From sequence record OQ411014.1: a DNA stretch of 64,000 bases, one strand, 5' to 3'. Below the pieces are notes generated by a model. It was not told the DNA's origin. It searched no databases and saw only the letters and a program-made list of their open reading frames with translations. This document shows positions 3,809-64,000 of this stretch, piece by piece. The stretch's first letter is position 1. Each line of letters starts with the position of its first letter. The translations under genes were made by a program, and so were the position numbers.

Positions 3809-4305
3809 CAACTGTTTTCGTGAGTAAAGAATTAGGAATTGCTATTACTGACTCACGAGCCACGTTTCAAGAGTCCAGGAAGTTTCTTGGGCTTTTTAAC
3901 TTGACTCCATTACCATCGTATAAAGTTGTGAATCAAAAGGCTTTGTATGTTCATGACCGTTTATTCTTAGCATGTGGAAGTGTAGATACTATTGATAAAG
4001 TATTGCAATATTTCATCGACGGTACTAAGTTCAAGATAAACAAGAAAACTCCAAGCTGTGAGTGTCTTCTTCTTGGTAAAGAATACGGTGTACACTTGTA
4101 CGTGTGGAATGGTAAGATTCATAAGAAGACTATCTTCTTGGCGTATAATTTTGTACACTTCATGGGGTCTGGTAGTTCTGCCCTACTCAGAAAGTACTAC
4201 AAGACTTTAGAACGTAATACACCAGATGAAGTTATTGATATTTTCAAGACTGTACATTTGGATGATAGCTTCACTGACGATAACGTAAATTTATACAGAA
4301 TCTAG
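3805..4305 (+). CDS. HslV/proteasome-beta-like Ntn hydrolase
   Basis: N-terminal MTT, then TDSRAT, ACGS and MGSGS motifs in HslV-like order. Confidence 0.55.
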   Translation: MTTVFVSKELGIAITDSRATFQESRKFLGLFNLTPLPSYKVVNQKALYVHDRLFLACGSVDTIDKVLQYFIDGTKFKINKKTPSCECLLLGKEYGVHLYVWNGKIHKKTIFLAYNFVHFMGSGSSALLRKYYKTLERNTPDEVIDIFKTVHLDDSFTDDNVNLYRI

Positions 4306-7164: not shown

Positions 7165-7505
7165 TTTCAGTACTGAATAGTATTAGTATTGTTGTTATGA
7201 TTTTAGCCTGTACCTACGCTATCCTAGCTGGGGTGCTCATCTTCTACAAGAAGACTAAGTTCTTGGGGTGGTTACAGATAAGTAAAACTGGCTATTGTTT
7301 TGTGTACGGAATAAGTGCCTTTTGTATATACAGGGATTTATTTTTAGGAGTACTTCCTCCTGATTTCAATGGGTACAACTTTAGTGCAGTGTTCTTATTG
7401 TTTTATATTGTACTTATTGTGCTTGGTCTTTGTATACCGTATGTACTTATAGTTGGTGTTTCAAAGGTACTTGAGTACCGTAAACGTATTCCTGATGAGG
7501 ATTGA
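7161..7505 (+). CDS. Three-TM membrane protein
   Basis: 3 hydrophobic segments; tail RKRIPDED. Confidence 0.75.
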   Translation: MISVLNSISIVVMILACTYAILAGVLIFYKKTKFLGWLQISKTGYCFVYGISAFCIYRDLFLGVLPPDFNGYNFSAVFLLFYIVLIVLGLCIPYVLIVGVSKVLEYRKRIPDED

Positions 7506-7508
7506 TAA

Positions 7509-7838
7509 ATGAAGATGGAAGACTTAGTAGAACTATTACAGCCGTACGCTACAGTACTATTTTTGATTGCTTCAATGTATACTGTTGTAACTCTAGTACT
7601 TGGATTCTTCAAGTATCGAACACTAGCTAAACGCTTAGACGAGAACTTATGGCTCTCTGTTCCTAGTATCTTTAGTGTAGCTATTAGTATTGCAAACTAT
7701 TTTATTGAAGATCGTATGTTCGCTGCTATTATGTTATTATTTGTTTTGGTTGGGGTAACATTTGTAGGTACTATCTATGCAATGTGTAAAGGATTTGTGT
7801 ACGTTCGTTCCAAGATACCAGATCCAGAACAAGAATAA
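7509..7838 (+). CDS. Three-TM membrane protein
   Basis: 3 hydrophobic segments; tail RSKIPDPEQE like the upstream gene. Confidence 0.75.
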   Translation: MKMEDLVELLQPYATVLFLIASMYTVVTLVLGFFKYRTLAKRLDENLWLSVPSIFSVAISIANYFIEDRMFAAIMLLFVLVGVTFVGTIYAMCKGFVYVRSKIPDPEQE

Positions 7839-11525: not shown

Positions 11526-11647
11526 TTTTATTCTTTATTTTATGTAGTACTGTAGTGTATACTCTCTTCGCTCCAAAGAAATCTACTATACAGATCTTGA
11601 GCGAAGAGATTAATAAATCCAAATCTAAATCCAATAAGGAGAAGTAA

Positions 11648-11899
11648 ATGTCACTACTTGCTTTTGTAGTACAAATGCTCATTGCAGTTTTAGTCGTACT
11701 TCCAGTACTGATCGCGTTATTCCGTGCTAAACAGGGTGTGTTCTTCGCAACAATGGGCTTGACATTTGTTATCCCAGTTGGACACCAAATCATCTTTGGT
11801 TCTTACGCAAACATGAGCAATACTGTACTAATTGTATATGGTGTATGTTATGTTACAGCACTAGCCCTCGCAATCTTCACTGAAGCAGATAAAGGATAA
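11648..11899 (+). CDS. Small membrane protein
   Basis: Almost wholly hydrophobic; AAGGAG RBS. Confidence 0.75.
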   Translation: MSLLAFVVQMLIAVLVVLPVLIALFRAKQGVFFATMGLTFVIPVGHQIIFGSYANMSNTVLIVYGVCYVTALALAIFTEADKG

Positions 11900-17564: not shown

Positions 17565-17897
17565 ATGTTAGTATATAATTACTTCAGTTTTATAATCTTC
17601 ATGATGTTTTCGCTTTATATCATCATGGGTAACGTTGCGTGTTTCTTGAAGCATTATAAACTCGCAAACAGATGGTTTATGATGACAAATCCTTGCTTCC
17701 CGAATTTCTGTGCATTTATATCTGGGATTTTAGTACTGGTAGATTTGTTCTTGGGTATCTCATCGGAACAACCATGCTTCTCTGCGGTAGCGATGACATT
17801 TTTGCTCGTTGCAACAGTCCTGGGTATTGTGTTTATCATCTGTACAGTACTGATAGAGTTGATTAGTGATTGGCGACGAAAGTGGCCTGAACAATAA
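17565..17897 (+). CDS. Three-TM membrane protein
   Basis: 3 hydrophobic segments; GAGGT RBS. Confidence 0.75.
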   Translation: MLVYNYFSFIIFMMFSLYIIMGNVACFLKHYKLANRWFMMTNPCFPNFCAFISGILVLVDLFLGISSEQPCFSAVAMTFLLVATVLGIVFIICTVLIELISDWRRKWPEQ

Positions 17898-51457: not shown

Positions 51458-51756
51458 GCATTTATTAATATACAGTCCTAGATGAATTAATATAAAAAGT
51501 ACGATATAACATTACATACACGATGGCAGTACTAGAGTTCATGGGACGATTGTGTATAAGACTTCAGTACTATAGACAATACTTCAGTACTGACCCCCTT
51601 GCACTATATCTTCTTAGTACGTAAGAGTACAAGAAGTATTTTTCAGAGCCTGTACTTTTTTGTCAAAGCCTTTCCCTTCCCCAGCGTAAAAGTACTTTTC
51701 AGTACTGTCAAAATTACCTTCCACCCTCCAGCAAAAAGTTGGTTAGTACTCCATCC

Positions 51757-51847
51757 TAAATCCCGATCCTAAAAATTTTGGAGTACCAACGAAATTAAAT
51801 CCCGATCCTAAAAATTTTGGAGTACCAACGAAATTAAATCCCGATCA
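51757..51847. repeat. Tandem direct repeat, 39-bp unit x ~2.3
   Basis: TCCCGATC recurs at 51761, 51800 and 51839; unit AAATCCCGATCCTAAAAATTTTGGAGTACCAACGAAATT. Confidence 0.9.
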
Positions 51848-51971
51848 TCAAAAGTTCAAATTTACCTTGACGTGTTCATGATTTCTCTCTATAGTACTGG
51901 CTAATGTTCAGTACTGAATGATGTTTTTCACTATAGGGTAAATTAATCTCCTATATAGTAGAAATTAGGGC

Positions 51972-51999
51972 TTGACTAAATCTTTCAGTACTGTATAAT
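51972..51999 (+). promoter_or_regulatory. Sigma70 promoter with no ORF downstream
   Basis: TTGACT-16-TATAAT, AGTACT in the spacer. Confidence 0.75.
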
Positions 52000-52004
52000 G
52001 ATTT

Positions 52005-52210
52005 GCATAGGGAGAGAAATCACCGCAAAAGATTTTGAACCTTATGCCTCCTGTCGTGAGACAGTACCGAAGAGATTGACCCTCCTATGCTGGTGGTCAT
52101 CTTGGACAACTAGTTTTCTCTATTCATCCTAAACAGTACTGTTACATCCCTCTGAGCAATCAGGTGACAGTACTGATATTAATCCACCAGCGTCGTTCTA
52201 ACGATGCTAA
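52005..52210 (+). ncRNA. Candidate structured ncRNA
   Basis: CTGTC-GTGA-GACAG, AGAT-GACC/GGTC-ATCT and GCGTCGT-TCTA-ACGATGC stems behind the promoter. Confidence 0.4.
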
Positions 52211-52364
52211 TGATAAACAACGTATATAGTACTACATGATAGTCTTTGTATCTTCTGGGTGAGTTATGAGGGTTATGATGGCAGTACTGTATACACTCCT
52301 ATTAAGAAGTTACAGATACACTAAGGGCGTACTATGGGTAAATTTTGGGCGTACTTGTGCTAGG

Positions 52365-52576
52365 AAGGATTTAGCCGTAGAGACACCTAGACCTCCAGAC
52401 TCCTGGATGGATAGATGGATTTCCATCTAGACGGCTAAACGGCTAGATTGCTGGATGGATAGATGGCTAGCCATTTAGACGGCTAAACGGCTAAACGTCC
52501 GAACGTCTAGAAGTCTGGCGGTATGGATGGCTAAACGTCTGGACTGATAAACGTCTAACCATCTGGACGGCTAAAA
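52365..52576. repeat. Degenerate short-unit repeat tract
   Basis: Interspersed GACGGCTAA, AACGGCTAA, AACGTCTAG and GGATGGATAG units; CTGGATGGATAGATGG...TAGACGGCTAAACGGCTA occurs twice. Confidence 0.8.
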
Positions 52577-52739
52577 ATCATTAGTGTCATTTTCAAGCAT
52601 TGGCTAGCCTACCGCGTCGGGGTAAATTCCCCAGCAGTATCGAACGTTAGATTTTTCTGAATCTGGAATCATTATCTTATAAACTGGGGGCAATGTCAAC
52701 GGCCTGGACGGATATTTTTAAAATTTTTTTCAGTACTGA

Positions 52740-52824
52740 ATTTTGGGCGTAACTATGCACCCGGTGGGCTTGAGTCTTTCTCGACTTGATGGAACTATTA
52801 TACAGTACTGAATTTTTAAAGCAA
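52740..52824 (-). ncRNA. Two-hairpin sRNA family, copy with promoter
   Basis: TTGCTT-16-TATAAT; GUC-GAGAAA-GAC hairpin; CCCACCGGGUGCAU core at 52755-52768. Confidence 0.55.
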
Positions 52825-52969
52825 TACCATAAACGCAAAAAGTTTTAATTAATTTGCTTGCTATCCTGGGCCGGACTATGGTACTATATTTCAGTACTGA
52901 GAAAGTGCGTTTACCTGCTAGGGTGCGGGAGTGTATCCTTTTTTTATATCTTGAATTTTGGGCGTAATT

Positions 52970-53039
52970 CCGCACCCTCTGGGGTTTCCGCTTTCTCGCG
53001 TCTATGTAGTAATTATACGCTTTTTCAGGATCAAGTCAA
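52970..53039 (-). ncRNA. Two-hairpin sRNA family, variant copy with promoter
   Basis: TTGACT-16-TATAAT; CGC-GAGAAA-GCG hairpin; ACCC-CAGA-GGGUGC. Confidence 0.55.
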
Positions 53040-53381
53040 TACCTAAAAACAAAATAATTGAAAATAATTTAACGCGTTTAAACGACCCGTAAAGCCCTGG
53101 AATGGTTGGAATGGTGCAAATGTATAGCTTAGGGGTAATAATGCGTTAGAATGCGTCTGAGGCCGTTTTACGGGGTATAGGGATGATTTAGTGGATTGAT
53201 TCAGTACTGAATGATAGTTCCCCTGGATGGTTGCAGTACTGAATAATAGTTCCCCTATATAGAAAGAAAACTATTTTAAAAGTATTTGTAGAAAGTACTT
53301 GCACCGTACTGATAAAAGCGTATAATGTTTTACATCGAGAGCGGGAACACTTCCCGCTACACTTTAAAAGAGATTAAAACG

Positions 53382-53744
53382 ATGGCAACTCAAATCACCA
53401 AAATTATTGCTAACCTGGTTAACTTCCGCGACGAGATGAAAGATCTTCCGGCGGCGACGGTTAAAACTCACATTGACGCATACCGCGAACTGATTAAAAT
53501 GCTGCCGCTTAAGCGTGAACAATACGCCGCCACCGTGATGCTTGATGCGATGATCCATAAGATGATCGCCAGTGATTTGACGATGGTTTATCAGTACATG
53601 GGCGAAAAATTCTCGGTGTATAGTAAACCAGTCCCAGGCATGGCAACAACTGAGGAATTGCACTGCCTTAACTTAAAGCAAGATGCATGGGATAATATGC
53701 CGCGTTTCATGGTATGGGTAGAAAGTGGTAAAATTTACGAATAA
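53382..53744 (+). CDS. Early hypothetical protein
   Basis: True start MATQIT; the MFYIESGN extension is promoter sequence. Confidence 0.8.
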   Translation: MATQITKIIANLVNFRDEMKDLPAATVKTHIDAYRELIKMLPLKREQYAATVMLDAMIHKMIASDLTMVYQYMGEKFSVYSKPVPGMATTEELHCLNLKQDAWDNMPRFMVWVESGKIYE

Positions 53745-53839
53745 GTTAAAAATTAGTTTGACAGTACTGAATAAAAGCGTATAATGTTTTATATCGAGAG
53801 CGGGAAGAGTTCCCGCCTCCATTAAAGAGGAATTAAAAA

Positions 53840-54064
53840 ATGACTACTAAAACTTTCAACGGCCATAAAAACTACAACCATTGGAATGTTAGCCTTTGGA
53901 TCAATAACGATGAATCACTGTACCAATTGGCCCTGGAATGTATTAAAAGCACCAACACGCGAGATAAAGCGGTTGAGCGGATGTTACGCCTTTTAGGTAC
54001 TCACACGCCTGATGGGGCACGTTATAGCAAATCAAGCGTTCGTGCGGCAATGGTTGGAATGTAA
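53840..54064 (+). CDS. Early protein, paralog of 56336-56575
   Basis: NGHKNYNHWNVSLWINNDESLY...TPDG..YS...RAAMVGM. Confidence 0.85.
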   Translation: MTTKTFNGHKNYNHWNVSLWINNDESLYQLALECIKSTNTRDKAVERMLRLLGTHTPDGARYSKSSVRAAMVGM

Positions 54065-54157
54065 TAGAATATATTTAAAGTACTATCATTCTATGCGATA
54101 GTACTTTATAATAGTGTTCTAACATACAGTACTCACTTAACTAATAGGATGTATACC

Positions 54158-54535
54158 ATGATCATTAAATTCTACGCTACCCGTGAAATCGCTCGCATCG
54201 TTGCCCGTACCGAAGGAGAAACCTTTAAAGATATGGGAACGAGTGCTGAGAAGGGTAAACGCTGGGCGGTACAGTTCAAAGAATTATCAGATATTATTAA
54301 TTCACCTGAGCCAGTACTGACAGCGGCAGAACAAGCGAAAGCCAATGAGCTGGCGGATCTTCTGAATGGTGTCAATGTGAACGTTAAAGTTAATGCGGCG
54401 GCCTGGTCACATGCTGATGCACTGGCAGCTTTAAAAAGTCCTGATAGTGTATCTCGTCGAGTGGTAGAAATAAAGCACGACCGCAAGGGCAACCGCGTTA
54501 CAGTATACAGTAAGCGTAAAATTGCAGTACTGTAA
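54158..54535 (+). CDS. Early hypothetical protein
   Basis: Start at MIIKF after AGGAT RBS. Confidence 0.75.
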   Translation: MIIKFYATREIARIVARTEGETFKDMGTSAEKGKRWAVQFKELSDIINSPEPVLTAAEQAKANELADLLNGVNVNVKVNAAAWSHADALAALKSPDSVSRRVVEIKHDRKGNRVTVYSKRKIAVL

Positions 54536-54633
54536 TAATTCAAAAAAGTACTTGCACAGTACTGAATAAAGCGTATAATGTTTTATATCGAGAGCGGGAA
54601 GAGTTCCCGCCTCCACTTAAGAGGAATTAAAAA

Positions 54634-54864
54634 ATGACTACTATGTATATGATCGAAGTTAAAACCGTAAAAGATACGACCACGAATAAAACTACTTACT
54701 TACAGCGGATCTGCGGTGTCTGGCAACGTATCAGCAAATCAAAGTACTTTAAATTAACATCATATGCAAATCGTTCGGATTCATTCAGTACTGAAATAAA
54801 AGGTAATAAAGTACACCAATACGGCACTTATTATTATTACAGCCTGGACGCGATTGCAGTATAA
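54634..54864 (+). CDS. Early hypothetical protein
   Basis: Own promoter, stem and GAGGA RBS. Confidence 0.8.
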   Translation: MTTMYMIEVKTVKDTTTNKTTYLQRICGVWQRISKSKYFKLTSYANRSDSFSTEIKGNKVHQYGTYYYYSLDAIAV

Positions 54865-54897
54865 TCATATTTTTTGAAAAATTTACAATTGCCGGTA

Positions 54898-54976
54898 TTG
54901 ACTTATTTTGTCAGTACTGGCATAATGTATTCATTGGCAGATAAGCCGTAGCCCATAGGGTGCGGAGATGTATCTA
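54898..54976 (+). ncRNA. Two-hairpin sRNA family, variant copy with promoter
   Basis: TTGACT-17-CATAAT; GGC-AGAUAA-GCC hairpin; GCCC-AUA-GGGUGC; converges on the next copy. Confidence 0.55.
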
Positions 54977-54994
54977 TAGAAAAAGTAGTTTAGT

Positions 54995-55077
54995 ATAGTT
55001 ACAGTTATGCACCCGGTGGGTTAGTGACTTTCTCGTCTTTATGTAGCTATTATGCCAGTACTGGATAGTGCTGTCAA
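54995..55077 (-). ncRNA. Two-hairpin sRNA family, copy with promoter
   Basis: TTGACA-17-CATAAT; GAC-GAGAAA-GUC hairpin; core at 55007-55020. Confidence 0.6.
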
Positions 55078-55156
55078 TACTTTTTTCTATTCAGTACTGA
55101 AAAAGTATTTGTAGAAAGTACTTGCATAGTACTGAATAAAGCGTATAATGTTTTAT

Positions 55157-55223
55157 ATCAGGACGGGGAAGAGATTCACTGTTAAGTAGTCTAGGTGTAA
55201 GACGTATGAAAAACACCCCTGAT
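55157..55223 (+). ncRNA. Pseudoknot sRNA family, copy B
   Basis: Own promoter 55122-55149; AUCAGG/CCUGAU closing stem; GGUG/CACC pairing. Confidence 0.65.
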
Positions 55224-55324
55224 AAAAGAATTAAAAAGTACTAGACAGTAAGAAATAAAAAGCGTATAATGTTTTACATCGAGTAGGGGGAATGGTTCTC
55301 CTACCTAAATTAAGGAATTACAAA

Positions 55325-55924
55325 ATGAATACTATCGTTAAATCTTTCGCAGACCTGGACGCAGAACAGAAGATCGCAGCGGTTGAAATGTATACAGACC
55401 GTGAAAAAGATAGCTCGGAAGATTTCTTTTCCGAAGGTGTAGTGGAATATTACCGTGAAACGGTACTACCTGAATACGGCATAGATGAAGCTGAATTGCA
55501 ATACAGTGGTTTTTGGTCGCAAGGTGACGGTGCATCAATCAGTACTGACAGCGTGGACGCGGAGAAGTTTTTACGCAAGATTAAAGCGTTAACGAAATAT
55601 CGTTCTATCCGTCACTTGTTGAATGAAGATGATTTGGCAATGAGTGTAGAACGTTCACACTCTCGCTACGCACACGAAAACACGGTAAGCGGATACATTG
55701 AAACGGCGTACACTGATTTAACTGTAAAACAAGCGGCACTTGCTGATGACCTGGAAAACGTACTGACCGAAACTATCCGCGAATTGTCTTGTGAACTGTA
55801 CCGTGAACTTGAGAAGGCTTATGATGATTATTACAGTACTGAAAGCATGGTTAATCAAATCGAGGGTAATGGTTACCAGTTTGAAGTAAACGAAGATGGC
55901 GACGTGGTAGGGATTGAATACTAA
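55325..55924 (+). CDS. Acidic early protein with YSGFWSQGDGAS motif
   Basis: True start MNTIVK; D/E-rich; motif recalled from phage and plasmid proteins of unclear function. Confidence 0.8.
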   Translation: MNTIVKSFADLDAEQKIAAVEMYTDREKDSSEDFFSEGVVEYYRETVLPEYGIDEAELQYSGFWSQGDGASISTDSVDAEKFLRKIKALTKYRSIRHLLNEDDLAMSVERSHSRYAHENTVSGYIETAYTDLTVKQAALADDLENVLTETIRELSCELYRELEKAYDDYYSTESMVNQIEGNGYQFEVNEDGDVVGIEY

Positions 55925-56017
55925 AAAAGTACTTGCATAGTACTGAATAAGGCGTATAATGTTTTATATCGAGAGCGGGAACACTTCCCGCCTCACATTA
56001 AGAGGAATTAAAAAAAA

Positions 56018-56251
56018 ATGAGTACTATCTTAACCGTTTCTCAATCTGTTGCCCTGGCTGACTTGTTGAACGCTTTAAGCCGTTGTACTGAGGTTGGCTT
56101 GTTTGATGTGGTTGACGTTGCCCCTGATGTTATCAATCATTTTTGTGATGCAATGGCTGAATGCCAGGAAGATGATCGCCGTATGATGGCGGTAAACTTT
56201 GCGGAAGTCCAGCCGGGAGAGTTAAAAGGTTTACCGGAAGTTAAAAATTAG
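56018..56251 (+). CDS. Early hypothetical protein
   Basis: Own promoter and GAGGA RBS. Confidence 0.8.
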   Translation: MSTILTVSQSVALADLLNALSRCTEVGLFDVVDVAPDVINHFCDAMAECQEDDRRMMAVNFAEVQPGELKGLPEVKN

Positions 56252-56335
56252 TTTGACAGTACTATCAAATAGTGTATAATGTTTTATATCGAGAGCGGGA
56301 ATGGTTCCCGCCTCCAATTAAGAGAGATTAATATC

Positions 56336-56575
56336 ATGGCAACTACTAAAACTTACAACGGTTACAAAAACAAAACTCATTGGAACGTTTCTTTGTGGAT
56401 CAATAACGATGAATCATTGTACCGCCTGGCGAAAGAGTTTATCGACGATAACGCTAATCGTGAAGATGCAGCCCGTCAGATGATGCTCTTTCTGGAACAA
56501 ACTGGACAAGATAAAACACCGGACGGCTTTAAGTATAGTACTACTGCGATCCGTGCGGCAATGGTTGGAATGTAA
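56336..56575 (+). CDS. Early protein, paralog of 53840-54064
   Basis: NGYKNKTHWNVSLWINNDESLY...RAAMVGM. Confidence 0.85.
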   Translation: MATTKTYNGYKNKTHWNVSLWINNDESLYRLAKEFIDDNANREDAARQMMLFLEQTGQDKTPDGFKYSTTAIRAAMVGM

Positions 56576-56664
56576 AAAAAAGAGTAGACAGTACTGAATA
56601 AAAGCGTATAATGTTTTATATCGAGAGCGGGAATGGTTCCCGCTACTAACCTGGAGTAATTGCA

Positions 56665-56850
56665 ATGCTGAATATTTTAATCGTTGATGAACATGGTAAA
56701 GAACTGGAATCATTTGAGTCTATGATCAATCCAATTGGTTCAAAGACTATCACTACTAATCTGGCTGTTTATGAATGTAATGAGTTTTCTGTTGACTTTA
56801 AACGCAATGAGATTGTAGTACACGTTCAAAATGATTTTATGAAATTTTAA
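56665..56850 (+). CDS. Early hypothetical protein
   Basis: Own promoter; GGAG RBS. Confidence 0.75.
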   Translation: MLNILIVDEHGKELESFESMINPIGSKTITTNLAVYECNEFSVDFKRNEIVVHVQNDFMKF

Positions 56851-56939
56851 AATAGTACTTGCATAGTACTGAATAAGGCGTATAATGTTTTATATCGAGA
56901 GCGGGAATGGTTCCCGCCTCACTATTAAGGAATACTACA

Positions 56940-57161
56940 ATGGCTAATATCACTACTCTTTCCCAACTTGAAGCACTGGTTAAATCTATGCGTGACCATG
57001 CCAATAGTATTGGTGTACAAGATCCGGCGGTATGTTTTTGTGACGAATTGAATGATGATACTTTAATCATTGCAGAAGTCCAGGACGTTTCCAACTATTC
57101 ATCGCGTTACACTGGCGACGTAGCAAATAAAGGTGACTTCTGTTTATACCTTACAAAATAA
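56940..57161 (+). CDS. Early hypothetical protein
   Basis: True start MANITT after AAGGA. Confidence 0.8.
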   Translation: MANITTLSQLEALVKSMRDHANSIGVQDPAVCFCDELNDDTLIIAEVQDVSNYSSRYTGDVANKGDFCLYLTK

Positions 57162-57211
57162 TAACAACGGGGATAATAACTCCCCGTTACTTTTTCAGTA
57201 CTGAATCATTT

Positions 57212-57295
57212 AATAGACGGATCTATGCACCCGGTGGGTTAGTGACTTTCTCGTCTTTATGTAGCTATTATGCCAGTACTGGATTGTATTGTCAA
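57212..57295 (-). ncRNA. Two-hairpin sRNA family, copy with promoter
   Basis: About 60 bp identical to the 55007 copy; TTGACA-17-CATAAT; core at 57225-57238. Confidence 0.6.
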
Positions 57296-57418
57296 GCATT
57301 TAAAGTACATTTATTTTAAAAAGAATATGAAGAAAGTACTATACACGGCTGAATAAAAGCGTATAATGTTTTGCATAGGGGGAAACAACTTCCCCCACTA
57401 ATTAAGAGAGAAATAAAA

Positions 57419-57625
57419 ATGGCTAAATGTACTATTTGTAATAAAGCAATTGTGCTAGTTCCTTCCGCTAGTGAACGTGCTAAACGTTATGGTGGCAAAG
57501 CGTCAGACTATACAAAAATGTTCACTACTCATACTGAATGTGCTATTAAAAAACGTTCAGAAGAAAGCACTGAATTAATGCGTCGAATTGTCGCGGAATC
57601 AAAAGCTAAAAAAGTACTTGCATAA
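57419..57625 (+). CDS. Early protein with possible Zn site (CxxC...HxxC)
   Basis: True start MAKCTIC; later HTEC. Confidence 0.75.
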   Translation: MAKCTICNKAIVLVPSASERAKRYGGKASDYTKMFTTHTECAIKKRSEESTELMRRIVAESKAKKVLA

Positions 57626-57693
57626 CTTATTCAGTACTGTACAATGTTTTTCAAAGGGGGAACAACTTCCCCCGCTAATTAAGGAATAAGAAA

Positions 57694-57930
57694 ATGGCTG
57701 AACAAATTAAATCAACGTCTTCGAATGTGACGGGTACTGTAGCTCACTTTATCGGTGATGAATCGCGTGGTGTTCCCTATTGTGCGGTGCATGTAAACAC
57801 TGAGGGTAACTACTGGTTTACAGTTTACGGATCATATTCATTTGGACGACCTGGACACCAAAAAATCCTGGATAAAGTACAACCAACGGGTAAAAATATC
57901 ACTGCTGAAATGTTTTATAAAAAATCATAA
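57694..57930 (+). CDS. Early hypothetical protein
   Basis: Own promoter; AAGGA RBS. Confidence 0.8.
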   Translation: MAEQIKSTSSNVTGTVAHFIGDESRGVPYCAVHVNTEGNYWFTVYGSYSFGRPGHQKILDKVQPTGKNITAEMFYKKS

Positions 57931-58018
57931 AAGTACTTGCATAACTTATTCAGTACTGTACAATGTTTTATATCGAGAGCGGGGAATACTTCCTCGCCTT
58001 AACTAAAAGGATATACTA

Positions 58019-58318
58019 ATGAAAATTGCACTAATCGCCCTGGCCTTGTCTGTTTCCTCTTTCGCCGCTACTGCATCGCGTGATGTACCAACTGAAAAAT
58101 TTATTCAGTGCCAGGTTATCATGACAGACGAAAACACGGGCGGCATGTTTACCAAACCGCTTGAATTAAATCCGGCGATGTTTAAGGCGGGGATGTTCCA
58201 CGAAGAAGACGAAAAAGGCAGTACTACAATCTATTACGACGAACAACGTAAACGCGGCACTGTTACGGTAATGGATGAATCATCAGTTACCTTTACGGGG
58301 ATCATTACCTGTAAGTAA
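58019..58318 (+). CDS. Early exported two-Cys protein
   Basis: Signal peptide MKIALIALALSVSSFA; IQC and C-terminal ITCK. Confidence 0.8.
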   Translation: MKIALIALALSVSSFAATASRDVPTEKFIQCQVIMTDENTGGMFTKPLELNPAMFKAGMFHEEDEKGSTTIYYDEQRKRGTVTVMDESSVTFTGIITCK

Positions 58319-58420
58319 TAAGGGGAATTATCATCATAACTTTCACTGGCGGTTAACAGTACTGAATCATAGGGGGAATAGTTCCCCCTTACTATATTAA
58401 ACATCAAAGGAGTAAAGGCA

Positions 58421-58690
58421 ATGGCTATCATCACGGCAAAGACTATCTATACTATTCAACATGGTAATCAGTCCTACCAGGTGGAAGGCGTGGAAGGTTT
58501 AAAACAGTACTGCGACGATATTATGGGCGGCCTGGTTGACCGTATGACGGCGGGGAATGTAGGCCATCATTTAACTGATAAGATGAATCAGCACGCTTTC
58601 TTGATGAAATCATTCGACGAGCTTGATCTAATCGTCGATACCGTTCGCAGTGTAAAACAGTATATTGATGATATAACCAAAGATGATTGA
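58421..58690 (+). CDS. Early hypothetical protein
   Basis: 89 aa; AAGGAG RBS. Confidence 0.8.
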   Translation: MAIITAKTIYTIQHGNQSYQVEGVEGLKQYCDDIMGGLVDRMTAGNVGHHLTDKMNQHAFLMKSFDELDLIVDTVRSVKQYIDDITKDD

Positions 58691-58872
58691 TAGTACTGTA
58701 AACGTGTATAAGCCTGTAGAATCAATTCTACGGGCTTTTTTGTTTTATATGATGTGTTAGCCTGGCTGGTGGCGTTAAGGCCGTTAGAATGCGATTGAGA
58801 GCGTCGAAAGTATTTTAAAAGTATTTTTAGAAAGTACTTGCACAGTACTGATAAAAGCGTATAATGTTTTAC

Positions 58873-58945
58873 ATCAGGACGGGGAAGCAAACTAGCTCAA
58901 CCGTTAAGTAGTCCAGGAGTAAGACATACGAAAACCTCCCCTGAT
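58873..58945 (+). ncRNA. Pseudoknot sRNA family, copy A
   Basis: Own promoter 58838-58865; AUCAGG/CCUGAU, ACGG/CCGU, GUAGUC/GAC-UAC and GGAG/CUCC pairings. Confidence 0.65.
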
Positions 58946-59024
58946 AAAGTACTAAAAAGTAGTTTGACAATAGAAAGTAAACGAGTATAATACTCACATC
59001 AACTTAACGAAAGGAATAAAAAAA

Positions 59025-59252
59025 ATGGCTATCATCATCACTCGCGTATCTGGTACAGTTGGCAATGCGGTAGTAGTAGCGGTTATCACTAACAAGAAAG
59101 GTGCGGAACTGCATTTTGCAATGAATAACTGGTCAGTGAATGAGTTCGGGCAGTTCGCTAGTGTAGAATACATTGAAACCTATCAAGTACCGACTATTAG
59201 CTTAACTGATTTAGGTGTCGAGCGTATCCTTTGCCTGGATGAATTAAACTGA
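59025..59252 (+). CDS. Early hypothetical protein
   Basis: Own promoter at 58964; AAGGA RBS. Confidence 0.8.
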   Translation: MAIIITRVSGTVGNAVVVAVITNKKGAELHFAMNNWSVNEFGQFASVEYIETYQVPTISLTDLGVERILCLDELN

Positions 59253-59339
59253 TAAAAAGTACTTGCACAGTACTGAAAAAAGCGTATAATGTTTTATATA
59301 GGGGGAAACAACTTCCCCCGCTAATTAAGGAATAAGAAA

Positions 59340-59552
59340 ATGGCTAATATCTGCACTGTACTGAAAAATGCAAAACAAGTTTTATTTTCTGACCATGAAA
59401 ATTTTAATAAAGATATTACAGGCGTTAAGAATATCAAAGATGTAAAAAGTGCAATAGGTATCTATTGCAATATGAAACGTGTTGGAACGTTCGGTGACAA
59501 GGTACTATATCAGGCAGGGGATTACAATTTTACACTGACTATCATTAACTAA
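59340..59552 (+). CDS. Early hypothetical protein
   Basis: Own promoter; AAGGA RBS. Confidence 0.8.
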   Translation: MANICTVLKNAKQVLFSDHENFNKDITGVKNIKDVKSAIGIYCNMKRVGTFGDKVLYQAGDYNFTLTIIN

Positions 59553-59638
59553 AAATATTATCACAGTACTATTGACATAATTTGATAGTACTGACATAAT
59601 AACTTTTATCAAGTACATACTATTAAGGAATTTAAAAA

Positions 59639-59818
59639 ATGGCTATCATCGCAAAAACTGAGATTCAAGGCTTAGATTCTATCCTCCTGGCTTATGAGTC
59701 CGAGAAAGGTTTATATGTTGTTTCCTATGGTGATTATATTCGTGACTTTGAAGAAATTGATCAAGCCTTTGAATGCTACATTCGCCAGGTGAATAAAGCA
59801 TACGACGATTACCGGTAA
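59639..59818 (+). CDS. Early acidic protein (59 aa; not in ORF track)
   Basis: MAIIAKTEIQG...; TTGACA-17-CATAAT promoter at 59572; AAGGA RBS. Confidence 0.75.
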   Translation: MAIIAKTEIQGLDSILLAYESEKGLYVVSYGDYIRDFEEIDQAFECYIRQVNKAYDDYR

Positions 59819-59901
59819 AATATTATCACAGTACTATTGACATAGTTTGATAGTACTGACATAATAACTTTTATCGAGTGCAACTATTAAGGAATACTAA
59901 A

Positions 59902-60153
59902 ATGCAATCTATCAGTACTTTAATCGATGCAGGTTATGATGTTCGTCGTTCCATGATCGCGGTTAGTTCTTCCCAGGTCGTTCAAAGTGGTTATGTATGT
60001 TTTGTTGTTCGTGGTACATTACAGGAGCGAGCAATAAACCACGATGTAAAGAATAATTGCTCTTACATTGTATTCCGAAAAGTCAAATATAAACTTGATG
60101 TTCCCGTAAAGCCTATTAGCGGGGCGTACAACGTAGAATCATTAAAAGCGTAA
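59902..60153 (+). CDS. Early hypothetical protein
   Basis: True start MQSIST; promoter at 59837. Confidence 0.75.
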   Translation: MQSISTLIDAGYDVRRSMIAVSSSQVVQSGYVCFVVRGTLQERAINHDVKNNCSYIVFRKVKYKLDVPVKPISGAYNVESLKA

Positions 60154-60221
60154 CAGCATAGCAGTACTGACCATTAACGCCGTAGCGGTCGATTTAGGCC
60201 GCTTATATTGAGGATTTAACT

Positions 60222-60611
60222 ATGAATACTAATCAAGTACTGAACGAAATCGAAAGCATCATTAAGCCGATGAAACGTGTTGATGCAATGCTAACACCGG
60301 AAGAAAGTCGCTTGTATGAGCGATACAGCGTCGAACAAGCCCAGGCGATGGCACGTATTCGCCCCGTTGCCAGTACTGACAAGGAAGATCCAACGTTAGC
60401 CATCCAAAAGAAGATCGACATCTTAGCGGCGAATATGTATATGATTGATGCGTCGCCAGGTAAAGTATTTGCGTATGATGATACAACTGAAAGCGATTTC
60501 TACTATAGCCTGGACGTGGGGGATCTTCCTATCGAGTCAGTGATTGAACATGTTGTAACTGTTGCTTATGATCATTTAGTTAAAAACAATGTTGACAGTA
60601 CTATCAAATAG
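60222..60611 (+). CDS. Early hypothetical protein
   Basis: 129 aa; GAGGA RBS. Confidence 0.8.
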   Translation: MNTNQVLNEIESIIKPMKRVDAMLTPEESRLYERYSVEQAQAMARIRPVASTDKEDPTLAIQKKIDILAANMYMIDASPGKVFAYDDTTESDFYYSLDVGDLPIESVIEHVVTVAYDHLVKNNVDSTIK

Positions 60612-60674
60612 CGTATAATGTTTTACATCGAGAGCGGGAATACTTCCCGCCTCACTAATTAAGGAATTAAAATT

Positions 60675-60908
60675 ATGATGCACATCCTTACTCTTACTCT
60701 GAATCACAAAACTTATGAAACTATCCTCGTCATCTCTGAGTCGCAGGAAAAGGTACGTGATCACGCGGCGAAAGTAATGCAGGCATTCAGTGAACGTTAT
60801 CCTACATGGGATCGTGATTATAGTATGTTACACATTGCCGATGGCAACGCGATAATGGTCCAGGACGTGCCAAATCACGGGGCTGAATCAGTACTAGTTT
60901 TATTTTAA
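60675..60908 (+). CDS. Early hypothetical protein
   Basis: Own promoter; AAGGA RBS. Confidence 0.8.
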   Translation: MMHILTLTLNHKTYETILVISESQEKVRDHAAKVMQAFSERYPTWDRDYSMLHIADGNAIMVQDVPNHGAESVLVLF

Positions 60909-60996
60909 AATAGTACTTGCATAGTACTGAAAAAAGCGTATAATGTTTTATATCGAGAGCGGGAATAGTTCCCGCCTTAACTAAAAGGGTAACATC

Positions 60997-61209
60997 ATGC
61001 AAGGTCAACTAATCGTTCGTAAATGGTCTGATACTAACGCTAAACCGTGGGATGTACAATACATCGCCCCAAATGGTGAATCCAGATATCAACCAGGTGT
61101 AACGCATAGTACTGAGCAATTCGCCGCCGCTCATCGCGAACGTCTGTTACAATCAATTCAGCAAGGTTCCGGTGAAAAATTCATTCAGGATCATTGGCTG
61201 AAAGATTAA
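60997..61209 (+). CDS. Early hypothetical protein
   Basis: Own promoter and RBS. Confidence 0.75.
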   Translation: MQGQLIVRKWSDTNAKPWDVQYIAPNGESRYQPGVTHSTEQFAAAHRERLLQSIQQGSGEKFIQDHWLKD

Positions 61210-61221
61210 CAAAAAAAGATT

Positions 61222-61313
61222 AAAAAAGGGATTGACTCCGGTCAGTCCTTTTTGCTATTATATACGCATCGAAACAATCTAGCCCACCGGGTGCATAAAT
61301 GTATCTTTTTTTT
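61222..61313 (+). ncRNA. Two-hairpin sRNA family, copy driven by a fused terminator/promoter
   Basis: TTGACT-18-TATTAT; core CCCACCGGGTGCAT at 61283-61296; ends in T8. Confidence 0.6.
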
Positions 61314-61386
61314 GCTGGTGGCTAGTACTGAAAACTATTTTTAAAAAGTACTTGCATTGTACTTAGAATAAAGTATAATGTTTTAC

Positions 61387-61459
61387 ATCAGGACGGGGAA
61401 CGAAACAAGTAACCCCGTTAAGTAGTCCAGGAGTAAGACATACGAAAACCTCCCCTGAT
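61387..61459 (+). ncRNA. Pseudoknot sRNA family, copy C
   Basis: Own promoter 61352-61379; ACGGGG/CCCCGU stem; 3' part identical to copy A. Confidence 0.65.
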
Positions 61460-61527
61460 AAAATAGTTTGACAATAGAAATTAAACGAGTATAATACTTA
61501 CATCAACTACTGTTAAGGAAACATAAA

Positions 61528-61803
61528 ATGCGGATTCTACTGACAGCTAACGAAATCGAACAAGTACTGACTACTAACCTGGAAGACTGGAAACGTGAAG
61601 CAGATATCCAGGCGGTTCAATTGCTTAACGATAAGTTAACGCCGGATGACTTAAGCAAAATTGTAGATCCTCAATTCTACGAAGATATCCACGACACCGC
61701 GTTAAGCGTCGAGGATGTACTTGATAAGCATTTTATTGATATTGATTTGCAGGTTTACGGTCGTAAAAACTTTATCACTATCCACGACATTTACAATAAT
61801 TAA
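61528..61803 (+). CDS. Early acidic protein
   Basis: Own promoter at 61468; AAGGA RBS. Confidence 0.8.
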   Translation: MRILLTANEIEQVLTTNLEDWKREADIQAVQLLNDKLTPDDLSKIVDPQFYEDIHDTALSVEDVLDKHFIDIDLQVYGRKNFITIHDIYNN

Positions 61804-61883
61804 GTATTGACAAAGTATCTTAGTACTGTATAATAGTTTACATCAAGGGGGGAATGGTTCCCCTCAAGTCCAGGAGATACACC

Positions 61884-62147
61884 ATGAACGCTATTGAAAT
61901 CACTATTAATGCACACGTATACGACAACGTAGTACTGCAAACTACTATGACCGCCAATGATAGCAGTACTTTGCGAAATACTGTTATCAGTGCCGTTTGT
62001 GCTGCTGTTGGTGATGTAGCACTGGAGAACGCACAACATATTAACCAGGCCTTTACTATGTGCAAGCGTGATAACTCAAAACATATTATCGTCGAAGGTG
62101 TAGGCGGTGTTGAATTTAACGTATACATGAAAAAGGTAACAGCATGA
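61884..62147 (+). CDS. Early hypothetical protein
   Basis: True start MNAIEI after AGGAG. Confidence 0.8.
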   Translation: MNAIEITINAHVYDNVVLQTTMTANDSSTLRNTVISAVCAAVGDVALENAQHINQAFTMCKRDNSKHIIVEGVGGVEFNVYMKKVTA

Positions 62148-62335
62148 CCGTCGATGAAGTCCGCAAAGTACTGGCAGCGTTACGCTATCATAATCATAGC
62201 AAGGTCATAAATGATCCTGATTATGTTGATTCAAGCCTGGAGGAAGACACCTTGAACGCGATTAGCTATATGCAAACGTTACTGAAGCGTATGACTGAGA
62301 AGAATAGATCTGATTTCATCGGTGATAAAATTTAA
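62144..62335 (+). CDS. Early hypothetical protein
   Basis: ATGA overlap. Confidence 0.7.
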   Translation: MTVDEVRKVLAALRYHNHSKVINDPDYVDSSLEEDTLNAISYMQTLLKRMTEKNRSDFIGDKI

Positions 62336-62423
62336 AAAGTACTTGCACAGTACTGATAAAAGCGTATAATGTTTTATATCGAGAGCGGGAATACTTCCCG
62401 CCTCACTATTAAGGGATAACAAA

Positions 62424-62642
62424 ATGAATTTAAATAAAGTCGAAACGAAAACTATGGTTGAAGCTATTAAACACGGTTTCACATTTAGAAATGATTCACA
62501 TTTTATTAATTTTCAACAAGGCCATAGAACTATTAAAAAACTAACAGACAAAGGTTTATTAGTAGAAGTGAATGAAGGGAACGGCGTGGAATATCGCCCT
62601 ACCCATGACGGTATTACATTTATGAAATACAGTGTAAAATAA
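62424..62642 (+). CDS. Early protein, winged-helix-like
   Basis: RTIKKLTDKGLLVEV...YRPTHDG pattern. Confidence 0.65.
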   Translation: MNLNKVETKTMVEAIKHGFTFRNDSHFINFQQGHRTIKKLTDKGLLVEVNEGNGVEYRPTHDGITFMKYSVK

Positions 62643-62735
62643 TTCAAAAAGTACTTGCACAGTACTGAGATTCAGGTATAATGTTTTACATAGAGCGGGG
62701 GAATGGTTCTCCCGCCTACATTAAGGAATAGAATC

Positions 62736-62960
62736 ATGACTACATACGCAGCACTCGAATCAGTAGTATCAGACCTGGCATTTGAATCTAAGCCGTTTGA
62801 TGCGATCTATAGTACTGATTACCGTGATGCCGTCCTGAATAGTACGCAGGAAGAAAAAGATAAACTTATCGCAACATACCATGAAGCATGGAAGTACTAC
62901 CGCCAATGGGAAAAAGAAGAAAGTGAGTCTACCATCGACGGCCTGAATAATTTAATTTAA
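62736..62960 (+). CDS. Early acidic protein
   Basis: True start MTTYAA after AAGGA. Confidence 0.8.
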   Translation: MTTYAALESVVSDLAFESKPFDAIYSTDYRDAVLNSTQEEKDKLIATYHEAWKYYRQWEKEESESTIDGLNNLI

Positions 62961-63046
62961 AAAGTTTTATTTCAGTACTATTGACATAGCTTGATAGTAC
63001 TGACATAATAACTTTTATCAAGTACATACTATTAAGGAAACAAATC

Positions 63047-63460
63047 ATGACTTCTCAAGCTCAAAACGTCCTGGCCCAAAATATTCAAGCTGACAAAAAT
63101 CATGCCGCTATGGTTGTTGGTTATATTCAAGCTATGCAATTCAGTACTGTACACAATGAGAACGGCGATTACCTGGAAGATTATGAGCTATCTGATGAAG
63201 CACGTCAAGCGGCGGTGATTGCATGTTCTCGTTTCCTTGAGAAACACGGTAATGATCTGGAAGTAGTTCGCGGCATGTTTATTGACTATAGTTATGAGAA
63301 AGCAGGTAATGATCTGTTTCTTACCCGCGAAGGTCACGGAACTGGTTTTTGGGATCGTGATTTAGGTCACTACAGCGATGTATTCACGAAGTACTGCGAA
63401 AGTATTAATGTTTGTGATCCGTACCTGGGCGATGATAACTTGATCTATATGGGTGAGTAA
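63047..63460 (+). CDS. Conserved phage hypothetical protein
   Basis: AGNDLFLTREGHGTGFWDR motif recalled from a widespread phage family; promoter at 62981. Confidence 0.8.
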   Translation: MTSQAQNVLAQNIQADKNHAAMVVGYIQAMQFSTVHNENGDYLEDYELSDEARQAAVIACSRFLEKHGNDLEVVRGMFIDYSYEKAGNDLFLTREGHGTGFWDRDLGHYSDVFTKYCESINVCDPYLGDDNLIYMGE

Positions 63461-63721
63461 ATGGCTGTAGGATTTGCAAAGGACGGAGCGGAGCAATTAG
63501 AGATTCTGGCGGTCGTGGAGGCCGCTGTACAGCACGCAAGAAATCAGCTAGGGGATAGTACTACTGAATCACTTAAACACTGTCAGGACTGTTTTAAGCC
63601 TATTCCTGAACGTCGTAGAGAACTGGTTAAAGGTTGCAAATATTGTATTGACTGTCAAACGGAATATGATACTATATTTAAACGAGATCCGCGTAATTGC
63701 TGGCATAGGTCGATGAGATAG
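63461..63721 (+). CDS. DksA/TraR-family C4 zinc-finger protein (YbiI-like)
   Basis: MAVGFAKDGA...ESLKHCQDCFKPIPERRRELVKGCKYCIDCQ follows the YbiI pattern (MASGWANDDA...ESL..CEECGAPIP.ARREA.PGV..CI.CQ). Confidence 0.85.
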   Translation: MAVGFAKDGAEQLEILAVVEAAVQHARNQLGDSTTESLKHCQDCFKPIPERRRELVKGCKYCIDCQTEYDTIFKRDPRNCWHRSMR

Positions 63722-63759
63722 GGGATCACTCCCCTGTTTTATTATTTCAGTACTGTAAC

Positions 63760-63837
63760 CTATAGATACATTTATGCACCCGGTGGGTTAGTTGTTGTCA
63801 TGGGATATATTATGCCAGTACTGGATAAGGTTGTCAA
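63760..63837 (-). ncRNA. Two-hairpin sRNA family, copy with promoter
   Basis: TTGACA-17-CATAAT; core at 63774-63787 followed by AAAUGUAUC, as in the 61283 copy. Confidence 0.6.
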
Positions 63838-63951
63838 CAATTATTTTGATGTAATTATTTTAAAAAAGTACTTGCACAGTACTGAAAAAGGCGTATAATG
63901 TTTTACATCGAGAGGGGGAATACTTCTCCCTGGTACATTAAGGAATAAAAA

Positions 63952-64000
63952 ATGAAAGCATCAAAAAAACGTAATACCAAGAAATCATCTTCAACGTTCG
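63952..64000 (+). CDS. Partial early gene (runs off the window)
   Basis: ATG after promoter 63872, stem and AAGGA RBS. Confidence 0.65.
   Translation, partial: MKASKKRNTKKSSSTF

Follow-up and report, generated by a model that had tools for sequence, protein, structure and literature searches.

Short structured RNAs are coupled to strong early host-polymerase promoters in several described systems. The put sites of HK022 and the nut sites of lambda place a purine-rich loop beside a conserved sequence near such promoters, put consisting of two adjacent stem-loops (~70 nucleotides, nt) that act in cis on RNA polymerase, and the T4-type PeSL cassettes repeat a sigma70 promoter with a 5' stem-loop throughout a variable early region that is crowded with tiny genes. 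In PA5oct, a related jumbo phage of Pseudomonas, the terminal repeat represents the early region, is transcribed by the host polymerase and holds two highly expressed RNAs without an open reading frame (ORF), ncRNA001 and ncRNA002 (PMC7318152). Phage RNA decoys, such as RNA anti-CRISPRs and pseudo-ToxI, are likewise promoter-driven small RNAs, and they act by mimicry. Qrr (Qrr1-5) and OmrA/B are multicopy small RNAs (sRNAs) sharing one conserved segment, and in these families, as in the CsrB/RsmY sponges, many copies of such a short segment within an otherwise variable RNA provide dosage by multiplicity. Here we analyze a repeated element of the jumbo phage EJP2 (Asteriusvirus; record OQ411014.1, 349,185 bp). 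Eight copies of it, termed U1 to U8, are contained in the window, a stretch of 64,000 nt at the right end of the record to whose numbering all positions refer unless stated otherwise. These units recall each of the above systems, and we class them as phage-encoded small RNAs or leaders outside any named family.

The units share a common layout, in which a promoter is followed by a 5' hairpin (hairpin 1), a (C)UAA or UAG linker, a 12-nt block of consensus CCCAYAGGGUGC, a second hairpin (hairpin 2) built on the GGGUGC of the block, and a 3' flank with a conserved A-U-W. With two hairpins near a promoter they are reminiscent of put; unlike put and nut, however, they lack boxA and boxB, occur in ~11 copies per terminal repeat and in both orientations, and many of them have a terminator directly behind them, with no long operon downstream. 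The PeSL layout is matched exactly by the ordinary early genes of the window (gtataat...CAUCGAGAGCGGGAAnnnUUCCCGC), but whereas PeSL precede ORFs, in the units the place of the ribosome-binding site (RBS) and ORF is taken by the invariant block and a second hairpin. The two PA5oct RNAs resemble the units in being ORF-less products of the long terminal repeat of a host-polymerase-dependent jumbo phage, but each is present only once, with lengths of 236 and 451 nt (PMC7318152); the family model described below found no match in the ncRNA001 region, which is unrelated in sequence. Compared to the CsrB/RsmY type, GGA is present in only about half of the hairpin-2 loops, and no GGA-loop repeat is common to all copies. 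Rfam 15 returned no match at gathering score in the whole window and, at E<=10, nothing over the RNA body of any unit in 52000-64000; a weak patAB match (61209-61264) comprises the U7 promoter and terminator hairpin only. Nor did we find a description of the units in the literature on Asteriusvirus, RaK2, PBECO4/121Q, fENko-Kae01 and fEgEco12.

We consider it very probable that the units constitute an expressed family of structured RNAs. The exact 14-mer CCCACCGGGTGCAT is present at 52755(-), 55007(-), 57225(-), 61283(+) and 63774(-), with 0 expected in 100 shuffles, and is accompanied by the variants CCTGCTAGGGTGC (52914-52926, +), CCCATAGGGTGC (54952-54963, +) and CCCAGAGGGTGC (52972-52983, -). 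These five sites and three variants are those recorded in a first-pass annotation of this DNA, which had been made from the letters alone and had proposed a multicopy immediate-early sRNA family. A covariance model built from an alignment of 63 units from several phages, run with filters off over the window, recovered exactly the eight units (E 4e-12 to 1e-5), followed by a next best hit at E=0.09. While the count of eight thus stands for the window, it understates the phage: three further units are located beyond the window end, giving 11 units per EJP2 terminal repeat, and with the repeat at both genome ends a packaged genome should carry ~22.

Both hairpins are supported by covariation, and their predicted fold is RNA-like and strand-specific. 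Hairpin 1 has a stem of 3-5 bp of almost any sequence (GUC/GAC, GAC/GUC, CGC/GCG, GGC/GCC, GGAG/CUCC and UGAG/CUCA, and additionally GACG/CGUC, UCCA/UGGA, AGCA/UGCU, CCAC/GUGG and CAAA/UUUG) below a purine-rich loop of 6-8 nt (GAGAAA, GCGAAA, AGAUAA or AGAACAA), and in roughly one copy in five it has degenerated into an A/C-rich stretch, for example AUGAAAACAAU. The stems originally read for U1 (GUC/GAC), U5 and U6 (GAC/GUC), U3 (CGC/GCG) and U4 (GGC/GCC) were right, but U2 has GUAC-UGAGAAA-GUGC, and U7 and U8 are devoid of hairpin 1, having an A/C-rich stretch there. The block carries 1.4-2.0 bits at 10 of its 12 positions, the two middle positions being more variable. Hairpin 2 comprises GGGUGC, a 6-nt loop (RNARRU) and GYRUCY; its 3' arm varies only by C/U opposite G and A/G opposite U, and the closing pair can be C-G, G-C, U-A or U-G.

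To put numbers on this pairing, we compared two alignments, both fitted to the model and hence favouring its structure, with column shuffles and with slid controls: in set A2 (68 distinct rows), 83.6% of cells were paired, compared to 72.0% in shuffles and 26.6-48.6% when slid, and 75 cells were changed on both sides, compared to 31.7+/-4.1 in shuffles (0 of 500 reached this value) and 15-28 when slid, while in set A3 (45 distinct rows, mostly from other genomes) the paired fraction was 84.2% against 70.1% and the two-sided changes numbered 66 against 23.5+/-3.7. On an unfitted MAFFT alignment, hairpin 2 was paired at 89.9%, as opposed to 32-65% when slid. The covariation across related phages that the first-pass annotation had suggested looking for is present, far beyond both the shuffled and the slid controls. 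The top mutual-information pairs correspond to the hairpin-1 stem columns, and no long-range (tertiary) pair emerged from this measure. Half of the consensus pairs in hairpin 2 (three out of six) are G.U and would turn into C.A mismatches on the complementary strand, so that the fold should form only on the strand transcribed from the promoter. This strand specificity is our main argument that the element works as RNA.

The block itself offers an alternative fold, R-CCC-AYA-GGG-U, a mini-hairpin in which 4 bp enclose 3 or 4 variable loop bases. Because the mini-hairpin and hairpin 2 share GGGU, the two folds are mutually exclusive. The mini-hairpin is the thermodynamic consensus of RNAalifold, albeit a weak one (-0.96 kcal/mol), and in all three copies in which the first G is an A, the change is compensated (CCU...AGG), reflecting at least two independent events. 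The median energies of the two folds are -4.0 and -4.1 kcal/mol, and each is the more stable one in about half of the copies. Bistability of the block may be used in its function.

Pattern and model searches of fetched loci yielded 109 distinct units from at least eight phage lineages. They derive from G17 and 121Q (Asteriusvirus), Muenster and RaK2 (Alcyoneusvirus), the Munch/fENko-Kae01 group and several metagenomic contigs, as well as from Cronobacter phage GAP32 and a Yersinia Eneladusvirus contig, both putative assignments. The host genera of the carrier phages are Escherichia, Klebsiella and Salmonella and, by these putative assignments, Cronobacter and Yersinia. In IMG/VR, a 19-base family pattern matched only jumbo contigs of 345-378 kb and one 109 kb fragment. 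A blastn search with U6 hit 53 phage records, with 87-93% identity in Asteriusviruses and 77-84% in Klebsiella RaK2-like and Salmonella phages. In 36 related Asteriusvirus records the 87-93% identity extends over at least 80% of the unit, compared to ~84% identity at 30-50% coverage for the region around it; by this comparison, Asteriusviruses have kept U6 more closely than the early DNA that flanks it. The same query found no match in 5,426 E. coli genomes, in a search that is insensitive to short matches. In RaK2-like jumbo phages, the units appear to be confined to the terminal repeat, with about ten copies in each. Separately from the units, a block-like motif (GCCCACTGGGTGC) with no clear promoter is located 17 nt from the PhageTerm-defined left end of Muenster (locus L002 14030-14064, corresponding to Muenster record 1-35), and a further site is found at L004 ~19941.

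A sigma70-type promoter is correctly placed in 109/109 units. It matches at least 10 of 12 consensus positions in 96 of them, has a 17 bp spacer in 89 and a TG before the -10 in 71. An independent consensus promoter scan of the window found the promoters of U3-U8, five of the six having TG before the -10 (not U3); those of U1 and U2 are weaker, although only U2 had originally been described as weak. A conserved 'CAT' occurs 5-7 nt past the -10, also in the ordinary early genes of this phage, and judging from promoter geometry its A is the likely transcription start. The block begins 21-28 nt past the -10, that is ~+15 to +22 from this start, in rough agreement with the 15-25 nt first given. 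As had been noticed before, no RBS-led ORF lies inside any predicted transcript of the eight window units.

The 3' ends are more diverse. In 10/109 units, U2 and U7 among them, a U-run follows hairpin 2 directly, giving predicted RNAs of ~45-50 nt, and in 16/109 a strict hairpin-plus-U terminator begins at a median distance of 27 nt. Together, these two groups make up 26/109 units with either a U-run or a terminator bearing a U tail, and terminator-ended copies are predicted to yield RNAs of ~45-105 nt. In the window, an independent scan detected terminators at U2, U6 and U7.

Units are located where one gene block borders on the next, and four arrangements can be told apart. One is made up of the units with a U-run directly after hairpin 2, described above. 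Single antisense units (U6, U8 and several in RaK2, Muenster and Munch) aim at the end of the preceding gene and enter its strong bidirectional terminator, with predicted RNAs of ~95-105 nt that include an AU-rich spacer, usually with AGUACUG. Sense units restart transcription directly after a terminator, their -35 (TTGACT) being part of the terminator hairpin and its U tract providing the extended -10 TG (GGGGTTGACTTCGGTCGCCCC-TTTTGT-TATTAT); such a composite terminator-promoter is seen for U7 at 61224-61261 and for sense units of the loci L003, L004 and L005. One unit of phage Munch serves directly as 5' UTR in front of an HNH endonuclease gene. Convergent pairs account for 27/109 units and include U2/U3 and U4/U5, the two pairs known from the first reading; the transcripts of a pair overlap and the pair is a large inverted repeat, as is evident where U5 reads into the complement of U4. 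Sense and antisense copies number 3 and 5 in the EJP2 window, 4 and 4 in G17, 4 and 3 in Muenster, 7 and 3 in RaK2, and 5 and 2 in Munch. The mostly antisense orientation reported initially is accordingly a property of the window (5/8), whereas family-wide roughly half or more of the units are sense. With respect to the DNA between convergent units, Klebsiella and Salmonella pairs flank a palindrome that matches the Fur-box consensus at 16-17/19 positions (L004 ~17800-17860, L002 ~11615-11675, L005 ~2120-2170) or, in L009 and L030, at 14-15/19, and the EJP2 pairs are without a Fur-box-like palindrome (8-10/19).

Our favoured reading, which we hold tentatively as one that may well be right, is that the units give rise to an abundant immediate-early RNA presenting the block to a protein partner, either by titration or in an RNA-protein complex. 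Host sigma70 RNA polymerase would make the unit RNAs once the terminal-repeat DNA enters the cell. Each RNA would start at about the A of 'CAT' and continue into a short 5' hairpin of arbitrary stem sequence, a probable stabiliser of the same design as the 5' hairpins of the early mRNAs of this phage. The block would be the working part, read on the RNA by a protein, and the RNA would act by amount, soaking up a host factor or partnering an abundant early phage protein. The mixed orientation, the promoter on each copy and the terminator before sense copies argue for an RNA product that has a 5' end of its own, the preceding terminator protecting the unit's own initiation. Moreover, the 12-nt block is invariant while stems, loops and internal spacing vary, a pattern more easily reconciled with recognition by a protein than with a continuous base-pairing seed. 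Given ~11 copies per repeat, ~22 per packaged genome, and near-consensus promoters, the RNA probably acts by amount. Concerning the immediate-early sRNA family of the first-pass annotation, the family, its promoters, the covariation and the location in an early repeat read by the host polymerase all agree with it, but the term 'sRNA gene' fits only part of the family, as about half of the copies are without a strict terminator and, where context was read, are leaders before the next early gene. The decoy role that was also proposed there is a conjecture, and resemblance to CRISPR repeats, ToxI, boxA/boxB or ops, which might have backed it, was not seen.

Several observations weigh against our reading. 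By strict criteria, 56/109 units are without a terminator, and the sense copies whose context was read continue towards the next early promoter or gene; together, the missing terminators and these run-on copies make a role as cis leader possible. The fixed distance between block and promoter could equally be explained by an element acting on the polymerase during transcription. A Pfam search of the 27 early window proteins detected no RNA-binding domain, and the idea of titration is drawn from copy number and promoter strength only. Furthermore, the helices are short and marginally stable, as reflected by the RNAalifold energy given above and by single-sequence z-scores of -0.8 to -3.

One rival is a promoter-proximal element working in cis in the style of HK022 put, lambda nut or ops, on the polymerase that has just passed it. 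Here, the nascent RNA, or a small CCC-AYA-GGG hairpin in the non-template strand, would pause the polymerase, load a phage or host elongation factor and alter the handling of terminators, such that sense copies promote read-through into later early genes and antisense copies produce long antisense RNAs shutting early genes off. The coupling of every block to a promoter at a near-fixed distance (~+15 to +34), the restart of sense copies after a terminator, usually without a terminator of their own, and the ability of the 12-nt block to form a tiny hairpin, as ops does, all suit such an element. We nonetheless regard it as unlikely. The units have no boxA, boxB, ops sequence or Rfam match, their sequence lacks the G at -10 of the consensus pause signal, and they are not followed by a long operon; there is no evident need for read-through where nearly every small gene of the repeat has its own promoter, the strong terminator or U-run that follows about one copy in four within ~30 nt would make no sense behind an antiterminator, and the G.U pairs of hairpin 2 point to RNA rather than non-template DNA. 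Quite unlikely, in our judgement, are sibling base-pairing sRNAs that use a single-stranded CUAACCCA, possibly extending into GGGUGC, as seed for host or phage mRNA, with the AU-rich spacer, terminator and U tail of stand-alone copies binding Hfq. Stand-alone copies do have the classic sRNA layout of a conserved 5' part, an AU-rich stretch and an intrinsic terminator, and multicopy sRNAs with one shared segment are known from Qrr and OmrA/B. However, block complements occur in the window only at the units, apart from chance 8-mers, so no complementary site is enriched there; the CCC-GGG gap of 3 or 4 nt with free middle bases resembles a hairpin loop and not a continuous seed, and half of the copies have neither terminator nor U tail.

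We weighed two further explanations. If the units functioned as DNA, be it as R-loop origins of the T4 or ColE1 kind, as protein binding sites or as recombination cassettes like PeSL, their RNA would be a by-product. The units do mark gene-block borders in an early region that varies strongly, many copies have G clusters behind the block and AT-rich DNA downstream, the Klebsiella and Salmonella convergent pairs flank a palindrome resembling a protein-binding site, and a block-like motif lies 17 nt from the annotated Muenster left end. Yet the compensatory changes and the G.U dependence are the mark of a single-strand fold restricted to the transcribed strand, the hairpin-1 stem keeps its pairing while its sequence is free, which a duplex site would not need, and ten or more origins within 20 kb are implausible, making a DNA-level role very unlikely. 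In the remaining case, the units would be minigenes or ribosome traps, with GGGUG and GGAG-type loops serving as Shine-Dalgarno sequence for AUG UAU CUA UAG (M-Y-L) and tying up ribosomes or a rare tRNA, like lambda bar. U4 and U8 read (A)UG UAU CUA UAG, and AUG, GUG or UUG is found at this place in 49/109 units, giving MYL*, VYL* or LYL* 17 times; but 60/109 lack a start codon at this place, the peptides differ between copies, the ORF is lost while pairing persists where the 3' arm is of the CCGUCU type, and the spacing from GGAG to the start is zero, so that we deem this highly improbable.

A bolder reading would see the invariant, bistable block as a new phage RNA device, made in bulk during the first minutes, that either captures a conserved enterobacterial protein or reprograms the transcribing host polymerase. 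We regard this proposal as rather doubtful. Upon capture, a defence sensor, an RNA chaperone or a nuclease would be candidate targets, and upon reprogramming, antisense copies would represent a delayed off-switch for early genes. Jumbo phages of the RaK2/121Q group are widely isolated as therapy candidates, and their ~20 kb terminal repeats are annotated with 'hypothetical proteins' only. In addition, every repeat holds some ten copies of a structured RNA module, conserved and placed behind strong promoters, of which we found no description in databases or literature. Its near-invariance across five enterobacterial genera and its predicted very early synthesis suggest that it likely matters for host takeover. 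As handles for further work, the family offers a block of 12 nt at which mutagenesis can be aimed, a covariance model that can be used directly for annotation, and, in the terminator hairpin containing the -35 of the next promoter, a compact design that may be useful in synthetic biology.

Specific identities were also considered and rejected. For a lambda-type nut site, no boxA (CGCUCUUA or rrn-type UGCUCUUUAACAA; 0-2 mismatches) and no boxB (5 bp stem with GAAAA-type pentaloop; up to 3 mismatches) was found in 52000-64000, and the hairpin-1 loops of 6-8 nt and stems of 3-5 bp are both variable. An ops/RfaH site was dismissed because the 12-nt GGCGGTAGCGTG is unmatched with up to 2 mismatches and no long operon follows. 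PeSL-type cassettes share promoter and stem-loop, but no RBS or ORF is present inside units, the Munch HNH leader being the exception. Local alignment to the E. coli I-E and I-F repeats stayed within the shuffled range, speaking against an RNA anti-CRISPR that mimics these repeats, and similarity to the type III antitoxin ToxI was no better than shuffled; moreover, the units are dispersed under their own promoters instead of in tandem, and neighbouring proteins contain no nuclease domain. The segment GCGAAACCCAAGGUGCAUGCC of E. coli tmRNA resembles GAAAC...CCCAnnGGGUGCAU, but the family model scores the real gene at 2 bits (E ~8) and the segment belongs to a long helix in tmRNA, so we judged the resemblance to be chance. 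Read backwards, the EJP2 block (CCGGTGGG) resembles Chi, but the middle bases differ (CA or UA) in most other copies. Minigenes of the lambda bar type were discarded as a family feature, with a start codon in 49/109 units only and varying peptides.

Positions 52500-64000 are identical to the last 11.5 kb of the EJP2 record, where 27 small '+' genes and one short '-' ORF (53188-53304) are annotated, all products being hypothetical except one zinc-finger protein; the units carry no annotation. Direct terminal repeats measure 20,030 bp in the record of Klebsiella phage Muenster and 19,736 bp in that of fENko-Kae01, and the 20,993 bp repeat of Asteriusvirus fEgEco12 was confirmed by restriction digests (PMC13070987). 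These relatives place the EJP2 unit region inside such a repeat. Aligning the first 1.5 kb of fEgEco12 maps its left end to ~51,550; if the ends match, the EJP2 repeat (~21 kb) would extend from there to ~record position 8,500. Among the 27 early window proteins, the Pfam threshold was passed by two DUF7249 paralogs and by one DksA/TraR zinc finger, with one HalOD1 match below it; none of these is a candidate for RNA binding. The zinc finger is of the DksA/TraR-type C4 kind (63461-63721), whose family binds RNA polymerase, and the DUF7249 paralogs are encoded at 53840-54064 and 56336-56575. Details of the individual units are compiled in Table 1.

Table 1. Units of EJP2. Window positions are given for U1-U8 and record positions for the three units beyond the window end; starts and RNA sizes are predicted.
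Unit	Position	Strand	Promoter; inferred start	Hairpin 1 or leader	Block	Hairpin 2	Model score	Context
U1	52745..52824	-	TTGCTT-16-TATAAT 52824-52797; 52790	AGUC-GAGAAA-GACU	CCCACCGGGUGC 52768-52757	GGGUG/CGCCC, end 52745	40 bits, E 2.6e-7	No terminator by strict criteria
U2	52858..52946	+	TTGCTA-18-TACTAT 52858-52887	GUAC-UGAGAAA-GUGC	CCUGCUAGGGUGC 52914-52926	AGGGUGCG-GGAG-UGUAUCCU, then run of 7 U (terminator-like)	33.7 bits	Weakest copy; convergent with U3; terminator scan match 52920-52939
U3	52960..53039	-	TTGACT-16-TATAAT 53039-53012, without TG; 53005	CGC-GAGAAA-GCG	CCCAGAGGGUGC 52983-52972	End 52960	34.9 bits	Transcript then enters complement of U2
U4	54898..54975	+	TTGACT-17-TGgCATAAT 54898-54926; 54933	UGGC-AGAUAA-GCCG	CCCAUAGGGUGC 54952-54963	GGGUGC-GGAGAU-GUAUCU, end 54975	51.3 bits	Sense to early genes; convergent with U5
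U5	54997..55077	-	TTGACA-17-TGgCATAAT 55077-55049; 55042	GAC-GAGAAA-GUC	CCCACCGGGUGC 55020-55009	End 54997	54.7 bits	Convergent with U4
U6	57155..57295	-	TTGACA-17-TGgCATAAT 57295-57267; 57260	GAC-GAGAAA-GUC	57238-57227	End 57215	59 bits, window best	Stand-alone antisense RNA of ~105 nt; CAGUACUG spacer, then bidirectional intrinsic terminator 57191-57163 with U-rich tail (terminator scan: both strands)
U7	61224..61314	+	-35 TTGACT 61232-61237, -10 TGcTATTAT to 61261; 61268	No hairpin 1; leader AUCGAAACAAUCUAG	61283-61294	GGUGCA-UAAA-UGUAUC, end 61306, then run of 8 U	43.6 bits	Sense; RNA of ~45 nt; terminator hairpin of upstream gene (61224-61253) contains the -35
U8	63720..63837	-	TTGACA-17-TGgCATAAT 63837-63809; 63801	No hairpin 1; leader AUGACAACAACUAA	63787-63776	End 63764	44.5 bits	Antisense; then enters terminator hairpin of convergent zinc-finger gene (~63736-63721), U tail weak in U8 direction
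Further unit	record 1783-1839	-						Beyond window end
Further unit	record 3946-4001	+						Beyond window end
Further unit	record 7478-7532	+						Beyond window end

The region around the units has further peculiarities. At the inferred left end of the genome, a non-coding leader of ~1.7 kb (~51550-53320) contains a ~41 bp tandem repeat (~51760-51850), repeated 'ctaaacg/ctggac' motifs (52380-52560) and additional ORF-less promoters at 51972-51999(+) and 52699-52671(-), the latter followed by the hairpin AGAUUCAGAAAAAUCU. Between 53290 and 63950, a PeSL-like cassette precedes nearly every small ORF, so that each tiny early gene has a promoter and a 5' hairpin of its own; in this cassette, (a)aagtaCTTGCA-N-cagtactga-N-GTATAAT is followed by CAUCGAGAGCGGGAA-nnn-UUCCCGCC and the RBS. 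The hexamer AGTACT is the commonest of the whole window (1-64000), with 294 copies compared to ~16 expected, mostly within CAGTACTG, and is spread over coding and non-coding DNA, promoter spacers and the stretch just after many units; the literature on the phages named above made no mention of this excess that we could find. A scan of the window for tRNA and tmRNA found none. A Chi site (GCTGGTGG) lies directly after U7 (61314-61321, +) and at the same place in G17 and 121Q; further window Chi sites (+) are at 52089, 58765 and 28765, and Chi is also found beside or inside units in Munch and fENko-Kae01. Finally, a second family of ORF-less RNAs, 70-76 nt long and without an Rfam match, is present in three copies on the + strand (55157-55226, 58873-58948 and 61387-61462). 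Each copy has a standard early promoter before it and reads AUCAGGACGGGGAA...GUUAAGUAGUCYAGGWGUAAGAC...CCCCUGAUAAA with a long-range closing stem, and one of them directly follows U7, an arrangement that is kept in G17.

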